Source: Utricularia gibba | Taxonomy: Eukaryota; Plantae; Magnoliophyta | Reading direction: 5' to 3' | DNA: 64,000 nt | Assembly: GCA_002189035.1 (NCBI GenBank) | Contig: NEEC01000008.1 | Location: 2,046,001 to 2,110,000 of the forward strand | In this document: piece by piece, positions 21,080 through 24,005 of the stretch | How positions within the stretch are numbered: position 1 is the first letter of the stretch | Layout of the letters: every line of letters starts with the position of its first letter | Position numbers and translations under genes: made by a program | Notes under the pieces: generated by a model | Seen by the model: only the letters and a program-made list of their open reading frames with translations | What the model was told of the DNA's origin: nothing | The model's database searches: none

Positions 21080-24005
21080 ATGTGGGTGCGGTGGTTACTT
21101 CTTGTTTGTGCCCTTTCTAATGGAATGTCTACGAGACCTGATGTTGTGAATATAGGAGCTCTCCTTTCTCTTGATTCTGATATTGGGAAACATGTCAAAA
21201 TTGCAATCGAAGAGGCAGTTAAAGATGTGAATTCCAATACAAGTGTACTTGAGCACACCAAACTTCGAGTTAGTTTCCAAAGCTCCAACTGCAGTGCATT
21301 TATTGGCTTGACTCAAGGTACTTTCGTCCTATGTACATAAAAAATGTGAGCTTTCTTATTAGCGTTTGTTTTCATTCAGTGATGTTCTTTGTCTTGTTAC
21401 AGCTATGAAATATATGGAAACAGATGTGGTTGCTATCATAGGACTACAGTCTTCAGTGGTTGCTCACACTGTACTCTCAATCTCCCAAGAGTTCGCAACT
21501 CCTTTTCTGTCACTTGCGACGGATCCTACCTTATCATCCATTGAGTTTCCTTATTTTATCAGGACAACGCATAGTGATCTTTTCCAGATGATGGCTGTTG
21601 CGGAAGTTGTTACGCACTATGGTTGGAAGCAAGTAACTGTAATTTATGTTGATGATGATTATGGGAGAAATGGTCTCGCTGCATTAGATGATGCACTTTA
21701 TGCAATGAGATGTCATTTACTATACAAAGTTGCGATACCCCCACGTAAACTTGATCGTGATCAAATATTGAATATTCTTGTTAAGGTTGCTTTAATGGAG
21801 TCCCGTGTTATTGTTGTTCATGTTCATCATGATGCAGGGTTACAAATATTTTCTCTGGCTCAAGAGCTTGGAATGAGCATTGGGTATGTTTGGATTGCTA
21901 CAGATTGGCTTTCTGCTGCTTTAGACACTGTTCCACCTCTTCTGTCACAAGCTATGATGAATGATTTACAAGGAGTTCTCATGTTGCGTCAGCATACGCC
22001 TGATTCTGAAAGGAAGCAAGCATTCTTGGCAAGGTGGAGTAATGAATTGGTAGTCGGTTCGCTCAGCTGCACATATGCCCTGCATGCTTATGACACAGTA
22101 TGGCTACTTGCTCATGCTATTCGTTCCTTCTTAAATGAAGATCGAAATATTTCGCTTTCTAGAAATTCTAAGTTGAAATGCGTTAATGGGAGCAGACTTC
22201 ACCTTGAAAAAATGCTCATTCGTGATTATGGTCCTTTACTGTTGAAGAATATCTTGAAGACTGAATTTGTTGGCTTGACTGGGCTCATCAAGTTTACTTT
22301 TACTAGATCTCTTGTTTTCCCAACATACGAGATAGTGAACCTAATAGGAACTGGGGGGCATATTGTCGGCTATTGGTCCAATGGTTCAGGTTTGTCTGTT
22401 TCAACTCCTGAGGTTTTAACCAGGAGTCCAGCTAATCGCTCCAGTGCATCTCTAAAACTGAATAGTGCTGTTTGGCCTGGGGAGGTTTTAGCAACTCCTC
22501 GTGGTTGGGTGTTCCCAAATAATGGAAATTTGCTGACAATTGGGGTACCTCTCAGAGTTGGTTACCTGGAATTCGTTTCTACAGACGTTTCTGCTAATAG
22601 TTTCAAAGGATTCTGCATCGATGTGTTTGTTGCTGCAATAAACTTGCTCCCATATGCTGTCCCTCATAAGTTTATCTCCTTTGGAAATGGCCTAGAGAAT
22701 CCAAGTTATGATGAACTGGTCAATGCTATCACTACAGGAGTAAGTATTTTATTTACAGGAAATGTAAAAATATTAACCTATCTTTCAGCTATAACAAATA
22801 GTTCATTTCTTGTGATAGATGTTCGATGGAGTTGTTGGAGATGTAACAATTCTGACGAATAGAACAAGGATGGTGGATTTTACTCAACCGTACGCTGCAT
22901 CTGGGCTTGTCGTTGTGTCTTCTGTCAAGGTATTGAACTCAGGTGCTTGGCCTTTCCTGAGACCGTTTTCCCATCAGCTTTGGGCTGTCTGTGCTGCTTT
23001 TTTCCTCTTGGCTGGCATTGTCGCTTGGATTCTAGAGCACCGTACCAACAGTGAGTTCCGTGGACCACCAAGGAGACAGATGATGACAATTCTATGGTGA
23101 GGCTGCTTTTTTGTACAACTTGATGATATCTGGTGCTACTGCTACTCTCATTACAGAAAACGCTTGACAAGAGTTCATTCCTGCAGGTTCAGTTTCTCAA
23201 AGTTATTCTTTTCTCGCAGTGAGTAGACATTTTCTCTCAGTTTCTCATTGTAACAGTGATGGTGCAGCTCTCACTAACATCTCTGTTGGAGTGGCAGGAG
23301 AGAGTACTGTGACTACACTTGGACGCCTCGTGCTCATCATGTGGCTCTTCGTGGTGCTGATCGTCAAGTTCAGCTACACAGCCAGCCTGACGTCCATACT
23401 CACGCTTCAGCAGCTCTATTCTCCCATCAAAGGAATTGACACCTTGAAAGACAGCCAAGATGTGGTCGGTTTCCAAGCTGGTTCATTTTCAGAAAAGTAT
23501 CTGTATGGCCTTGGCATTCCCAAGTCGAGGCTCAGGTCTTTGGGATCACTAGAGGAGTACGCTGCTGCTCTTGAACGTGGCTCTAGACGAGGCGGCGTCG
23601 ACGCCGTGGTCGACGAACGCCCGTACATTGATCTCTTCCTGTCAAGGCAATGCCAGTTCAGGATCATAGGCGAGGAGTTCACAAAAAGCGGATGGGGCTT
23701 CGTGAGTTTCTTTGCTTGACAGCACCATTGTTGCCATCCTCCTCACCATGTTTTGTTTCTACTTGAAGGCATTTGCACGAGATTCTCCATTGGTAGTTGA
23801 CCTGTCGACAGCCATTCTAAAGCTATCGGAGAACGGAGATCTGCAGAGAATTCACAACAAGTGGCTGACAACAAGCAGCTGTAGCTCAGACAAGACAGAG
23901 ATTCAGTTGCAATCAAATCGACTCCAGTTGCAGAACTTCTGGATTCTCTATGCCTTAAGTGGGAGTATCTGTGTCATTGCCATTGTAATCCACCTCTGCT
24001 GCTGA
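21080..24005 (+). CDS. GLR3: Glutamate receptor-like channel, clade 3 (GLR3.3-like); exons 21080-21317, 21403-22739, 22819-23096, 23187-23218, 23298-23701, 23769-24005
   Basis: [14 protein letters not shown]1 [24 protein letters not shown]1 [14 protein letters not shown], gate [12 protein letters not shown]2 VDERPY and [17 protein letters not shown]4. Confidence 0.93.

Follow-up and report, generated by a model that had tools for sequence, protein, structure and literature searches.

Can a plant GLR keep its ligand-binding domain (LBD) and rebuild its ion pathway? The question is raised by a gene of Utricularia gibba located at positions 21080-24005 (+) of a 64,000-nucleotide stretch of contig NEEC01000008.1 (assembly GCA_002189035.1, forward strand, 2,046,001 to 2,110,000), hereafter called the window. 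The gene, with six exons, 841 codons and five GT..AG introns, is an intact clade-3 GLR of the GLR3.3 type, and it is transcribed and correctly spliced. A preliminary description of this DNA had proposed that three new basic residues in the pore could reduce Ca2+ permeability or create a non-conducting, modulatory subunit. Sequence comparison supports the pore substitutions as real and derived, rare or unique at positions fixed in the GLR3.3-type group, and makes the gene a credible candidate for a natural GLR variant with altered ion conduction; from the same residues we infer reduced Ca2+ conduction.

Derived basic residues in the pore

Residues were compared in a GLR3.3-type set of 21 homologues and in wider sets of distinct plant GLR contexts from 386 proteins (52 for M2, 229 for M3). 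The outcome is compiled in Table 1.

Table 1. Residues at changed channel positions in the two comparison sets and in the U. gibba GLR
AtGLR3.4 site	U. gibba site	Codon and window position	GLR3.3-type homologues (21)	Wider plant GLR set	U. gibba GLR
	603		D 21		S
T660	623	AAG, 23200-02	T 21	T 49, S 2, Q 1 (52)	K
H665	628	CGC, 23215-17	H 21	H 37, Q 13, R 1, E 1 (52)	R
N668	631		N 20, S 1	N 27, K 11, R 7, S 4, others (52)	S
N689	652	AAG (in AAG TTC, 23366-71)	N 19, Q 1, T 1	N 108, T 71, Q 26, K 6, others (229)	K
S690	653	TTC (in AAG TTC, 23366-71)	S 21	S 205, Q 17, T 3, A 2, Y 1, C 1; F 0 (229)	F
	665		V 21		L

None of the compared sequences except the U. gibba GLR has more than one basic residue at sites 623, 628 and 652; the U. 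gibba protein has three. The net charge of its 44-residue pore segment is +4, the highest among 53 distinct plant GLR segments, the other 52 being at +1 (30 segments), +2 (19) or +3 (3). By these counts the pore signature is unique and more positive than in any relative examined, and the residue pattern is well beyond chance. Measured against the clade-3 signature WFS(F/L)ST(L/M)FF(A/S)H(R/K)ENT ... LII(N/Q/T)SSYTAS, the protein departs by Thr>Lys, His>Arg, Asn>Ser, Asn>Lys and Ser>Phe, a deviation inside the GLR3.3-type family and not a ground for exclusion from it. The Thr>Lys, Asn>Lys, Ser>Phe and Asn>Ser replacements are each one nucleotide away from the codon of Genlisea aurea; for His>Arg (CAT>CGC) two positions differ, one of them silent. 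No paper on Utricularia GLRs with these residues was found in the literature.

The preliminary description had read the pore across a splice junction and placed the replacements at 23200, 23215 and 23366-71; the gene model agrees with it exactly (exon 4 at 23187-23218, exon 5 from 23298), and the ligand-binding motifs it considered retained, NRT, GSF and DERPY, are all present. The clade-3 consensus that it gave stands for Thr, His and Ser, fixed in 21 of 21 homologues, and has to be loosened for the Asn before SYTA, a site with some variation in the family and with Lys in a few other plants. The family alignment it suggested as a check shows that the new residues are not common among GLR3.3-type homologues (the Asn being kept in 19 of 21). 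Sequence errors, which would have refuted it, are excluded by DNA from another study (X4) with the same four codons and by RNA contigs, and the expression it left to be checked is documented by spliced RNA contigs. A Lys two residues before SYTA is seen in unrelated plant GLRs, namely in a fragment from Sarracenia purpurea, also carnivorous (P0275), and in P0286, P0339, P0131, P0196 and P0204.

The authenticity of the sequence relies on contigs of four public runs (X4, X6, X8 and X10) placed on window positions 20900-24400. An X6 contig of 1539 nt (record 14) omits 22740-22818, 23097-23186, 23219-23297 and 23702-23768, all with GT..AG borders, giving the joints 22739/22819, 23096/23187, 23218/23298 and 23701/23769; a second X6 contig ends at 21317 with a loose end that reads the first bases of exon 2. 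Because the contigs skip introns at GT..AG borders and the loose end reads exon 2, X6 is RNA from which all five introns have been removed as modelled. The 22739>22819 joint is likewise found in X8, and more exon pieces occur in X8 and X10. Over the GLR gene, RNA and window differ by zero letters, the 33 letters between the exon-3 and exon-5 pieces of the X6 contig matching exon 4 by length only. The X4 run, which is DNA and belongs to another study, spans the whole gene with 10 coding differences, none of them at the codons of K623, R628, K652 and F653 or at the stop; its differences in the pore region lie at 23333 and 23437. This agreement of the window with independent DNA and with RNA excludes sequence error, mis-splicing and RNA editing. 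An artefact of sequencing, assembly or annotation, or RNA editing back to the consensus, was considered as the source of the unusual residues and rejected, as two DNA studies and the RNA contigs match the window; even with exon 4 of the RNA contig matched by length only, its probability is negligible.

Position of the changed residues and loss of the cytoplasmic tail

Segment M3, the only part of the channel that HMMER aligned with GluA2, does so without gaps and places K652/F653 at GluA2 I613/S614. By the register of the SYTANLAAF motif we take the same two residues to correspond to GluN1 V644/A645, facing the central cavity, in which channel blockers bind. In a docking study, GluN1 A645 and T648 are listed near the blocker site (PMC8379669). 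The T660>K replacement lies in the pore helix of M2, one turn ahead of the FF pair. The pore loop is disordered in AtGLR3.4, the one plant GLR with a full-length structure; in an AlphaFold model of the tetramer, Phe662/Phe663 lie at the entrance to the filter and the conserved Arg666 lies where it is narrowest (PMC11479355). With Arg666 modelled there, H665>R is the direct neighbour of the constriction. When the GluA2 M3 alignment is extended without gaps, Phe626 falls at the Q/R position (GluA2 Q586), with R628 at +2 and K623 at -3, in a plant loop too diverged for secure alignment. The analogy with the AMPA-receptor Q/R site, drawn in the preliminary description, is a loose one: the idea of added positive charge is shared, but by this extension the Q/R-equivalent residue would still be Phe and the new charges would be displaced from it.

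At its other end the channel has lost a regulatory region. M4 lines up with the M4 of the homologues, which extend 62-86 residues further, and the U. gibba protein is without a cytoplasmic C-tail. The early stop is also in X4. The X6 RNA contig is continuous and unspliced from 23769 to 24091, across the TGA at 24003-05, and tblastn with the tails of 13 homologues found no tail remnant, hidden exon or frameshifted piece downstream, only chance matches elsewhere; RNA unspliced past the stop and tblastn without a real match together argue that there is no hidden C-tail exon. In Arabidopsis, a tail-less AtGLR3.3 does not rescue the glr3.3 mutant and conserved FL residues of the tail are required (PMC9828246, Wu et al. 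2022). Compared with AtGLR3.3, the U. gibba GLR is without the FL/RFL motif, which binds ISI1.

An alkaline/neutral invertase gene (Table 2) lies convergent to the GLR gene, recognized by Pfam Glyco_hydro_100 on two exons (E 3e-125 and 1e-67), with an RNA depth ~12 times that of the GLR gene. The stop codons of the two genes are 400 bases apart and RNA contigs span 24099-24265, which indicates that their 3' ends abut or overlap. This arrangement may be related to the loss of the GLR tail.

What such a protein would do can be proposed in outline. The reading we prefer, to which we give roughly an even chance, is a GLR3.3-type subunit still functional in ligand binding, with a remodelled, more positive pore and no tail, that would be weakly conducting or modulatory. 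After the split from Genlisea, single-nucleotide replacements would have occurred at otherwise fixed channel positions: Thr>Lys on the M2 pore helix, His>Arg beside the conserved filter Arg, Asn>Lys and Ser>Phe on the side of M3 directly beneath the SYTA gate, Asp>Ser in the M1-M2 loop, Asn>Ser after the filter and Val>Leu in the M3-S2 linker. The whole cytoplasmic tail was lost as well, and the LBD was kept under strong constraint. The protein would still fold, bind its amino-acid ligand and join a tetramer, each such subunit bringing three to four positive charges and a bulky Phe into the permeation path and escaping regulation through the tail. Cation and Ca2+ flux would be lowered or abolished in channels containing it, and it would serve as a weakly conducting or modulatory partner instead of a canonical GLR3.3, in a lineage whose proteins evolve very fast and seem weakly constrained today. 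It is tempting to go further and propose an anion-preferring or otherwise re-selected ligand-gated channel, or an obligate silent subunit tuning heteromers with the other GLRs of the plant. The re-selected channel is suggested by the extra Lys and Arg adjoining an already positive filter Arg, and by the Asp lost at the inner mouth; anion permeation through GLRs has been deemed plausible (PMC11479355). Nevertheless, this bolder proposal has a slim chance of being correct.

Constraint, drift and tolerated variation

A quick maximum-likelihood tree of 26 sequences (IQ-TREE) places the U. gibba GLR as sister to that of Genlisea aurea (support 99), followed by Sesamum, Olea and Oldenlandia, in species-tree order within the GLR3.3-type group. 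Its terminal branch measures 0.49, compared with 0.44 for Genlisea and 0.096 for Sesamum (~five times shorter), and substitution rates in Lentibulariaceae are among the highest in angiosperms (PMC5749785). The Genlisea orthologue (P0002, contig KE535210.1), equally accelerated, has F117L, L126I and A349K in common with the U. gibba protein. It differs in keeping T, H, N and S at the four pore sites and in reading FSFSTLFSSH (L001:2250-2279), where the second Phe of the filter FF pair has become Ser. Going by this motif, the Genlisea lineage has altered its GLR pore too, at another site.

Several observations weigh against the preferred reading. Counting as conserved the alignment columns that are at least 95% conserved among the other sequences, 23 of 266 such sites are changed in the U. 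gibba GLR, a load equal to that of Genlisea (22/263; compare Olea, 7/256, and Oldenlandia, 10/257), and the channel region is not significantly enriched for them (7/57 versus 16/209 elsewhere, Fisher p = 0.29). Between the window and X4 there are 8 nonsynonymous and 2 synonymous changes, and derived changes sit on both alleles: W569R (22948 T>A, in pre-M1, at a Trp present in 21 of 21) and L641F, situated between filter and M3, in X4; F379, T458 and V772 in the window. The 8:2 ratio suggests weak present-day constraint, 10 coding single-nucleotide polymorphisms being weak evidence. Expression is low, with an RNA depth of ~7-10 for the GLR gene versus 121 for the neighbouring invertase. The Asn site has Lys in 6 of 229 plant GLR contexts (~3%), so that this residue is tolerated elsewhere. 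Finally, that the changed residues line the pore is deduced from animal receptors and from the published AlphaFold model.

Much of this would be expected under relaxed constraint or early decay, in which drift in a compact genome, quick to mutate and prone to deletion, produced the pore, tail and amino-terminal changes as a side effect, and the protein has no specific function. The amino-terminal domain and the channel have changed at nearly the same share of their conserved sites (12.5% and 12.3%), derived changes segregate on both alleles, expression is low, and a tail that is essential in Arabidopsis has been lost without trace. The load shared with Genlisea, the loss of the C-tail and the 8:2 polymorphism were all left aside in the preliminary description, and together they make relaxed constraint a serious rival. 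Yet neutral decay would not spare the LBD, where 1 of 89 conserved sites is changed versus 22 of 177 elsewhere (Fisher p = 0.001), a distribution that argues for selection as a ligand-binding receptor during most of the branch; in Genlisea, by comparison, the protein's own changes are spread evenly, LBD included (7/90). The open reading frame is intact over 841 codons and five introns with correct splicing, and the terminal branch is about as long as that of Genlisea. Divergence from Genlisea amounts to a nonsynonymous rate (dN) of 0.23 with saturated synonymous sites (pS 0.78), so that only dN is usable; a dN of 0.23 despite this saturation indicates purifying selection over the long term. 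The polymorphism ratio, for its part, is weak, with 10 coding polymorphisms against a background of ~1.2% non-coding divergence between window and X4. Drift without function is thus a real but clearly less probable account than the modified subunit, somewhere near three parts in ten of our confidence. A processed or decayed pseudogene was also considered for this locus and ruled out by the open 841-codon frame, by five introns with GT..AG borders and by the spliced RNA contigs of three runs.

A gentler possibility is that conduction is much as in other GLR3s, with the substitutions making little difference. Plant GLR pores are already net positive (+1 to +3) and variable between clades, Lys recurs at the Asn site, as in Sarracenia, Lys or Arg is common right after the filter Glu in other clades, and GLR selectivity is not predictable from sequence (PMC11479355). 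However, Thr, His and Ser do not vary in the GLR3.3-type group, two or three of the basic residues occur together in no other sequence, and Phe is absent at the Ser site in all 229 contexts. Tolerated variation is accordingly judged unlikely, at about half the weight given to drift, and the subunit with a retained LBD and a more positive pore is preferred to both.

Gene structure, significance and related receptors

The features are listed in Table 2. The joined 841-residue model was used for the local alignment, the counts and the tree, and database searches were done exon by exon.

Table 2. Coordinates of the GLR exons and of associated features in the window
Feature	Position	Strand	Content
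Exon 1	21080..21317	+	Start codon, signal peptide, first part of amino-terminal domain; ends in phase 1; X6 RNA contig ends at 21317
Exon 2	21403..22739	+	Amino-terminal domain (PF01094) and S1 part of LBD; Pfam ANF_receptor E 1.8e-71
Exon 3	22819..23096	+	End of S1 (TNRT, TQPY), pre-M1, M1, M1-M2 loop including D603S; AtGLR3.4 residues 564-655, E 1.1e-35
Exon 4 (32 nt)	23187..23218	+	M2 pore helix and filter, with K623 and R628
Exon 5	23298..23701	+	Filter Arg-Glu, N631S, M3 with K652-F653 before SYTASLTS, V665L, S2 (GSF, DERPY)
Exon 6	23769..24005	+	End of S2, M4; TGA stop (24003-05) directly after M4
Further window/X4 differences	23333, 22537, 22300, 21242
Invertase gene	24405-26497	-	Alkaline/neutral invertase
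HMG-box-like segments	17478-18230	+	Stop-free segments separated by short introns

The domain order expected of a GLR is present throughout: an amino-terminal domain of the ANF_receptor type, a bipartite S1/S2, M1, the M2 loop, M3 with SYTASLTS, and M4. Exons 3 and 5 match Pfam Lig_chan (PF00060), and exon 5 also matches AtGLR3.4 residues 667-802 (E 3e-40) and the GLR3.3 LBD (E 7e-32). The closest solved structures are AtGLR3.4 (7lzh; E 3e-40 and 1e-35) and the LBD of AtGLR3.3 (6r85); S1/S2 align with the LBD crystal constructs of both, the S1 stretch is nearly the same as in AtGLR3.3, and GSF and VDERPY are present in the U. gibba protein. The top database homologues are annotated GLR3.3 and are 55-64% identical to it (exon 2), the first named match being a partial protein of Genlisea aurea; across known homologues identity is 55-66%. 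In two protein collections, which lack the U. gibba protein itself, no relatives (other Utricularia species or paralogues included) closer than 64% (exon 2), 74% (exon 5, word search) or 71% (exon 5, representatives) were found. Within the 64-kb window, tblastn of the GLR model matched only the gene at 21080-24005 and revealed no second copy.

The closest relative of the amino-terminal domain (64% identity) is a 3329-nt Logan contig from DRR494324 (L002), which covers exons 2-3 with a canonical exon 3. Its pore exons are not within 1.2 kb after exon 3, and its introns are for that reason longer than those of the compact U. gibba gene. Upstream of the GLR gene, segments resembling an HMG-box protein (..KRPPSAFFVF.., ..GEKWKSMSD.., ..KAPFVEIAEKRKEEYERKMQAYNKK) probably belong to the neighbouring gene.

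For the ion selectivity of plant GLRs, the conserved Arg at the modelled narrowest point makes permeation by anions a possibility (PMC11479355). In U. gibba an expressed, naturally occurring GLR3.3 orthologue has kept its LBD and changed the residue adjacent to that Arg, two M3 residues that would face the cavity and a residue of the pore helix, and has no C-tail. The four sites provide a ready-made set of single-nucleotide reversion mutants for ideas about selectivity. In a carnivorous, rootless lineage, GLR3.3-dependent wound signalling may have been reshaped. Should the gene merely drift, it still shows which channel positions tolerate change; should it encode a re-selected channel or a silent subunit, it would be a natural experiment on what plant GLR pores conduct.

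Comparison with known systems sets the U. gibba GLR apart in several ways. With Arabidopsis GLR3.3, GLR3.6 and GLR3.4 it shares the domain order, SYTASLTS in M3, matching S1/S2 and VDERPY, and it differs from AtGLR3.4 by K, R, K and F at T660, H665, N689 and S690 and, in its own numbering, by D603S, N631S and V665L. Among animal receptors, the nearest parallels are Q/R editing of GluA2 and the low-Ca2+ subunit GluN3, where a positive charge that one subunit brings into the filter or cavity makes the tetramer less permeable to divalent ions (PMC11479355). The parallel with GluA2 has limits: the U. gibba change is genomic and not due to RNA editing, and the sites do not seem homologous, R628 falling at Q/R+2 and K623 at Q/R-3 by the ungapped extension, and K652/F653 lying on M3. 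The parallel with GluN3 differs in another respect, since GluN3 is without negative charge, whereas the U. gibba GLR keeps the conserved Glu after the filter Arg.

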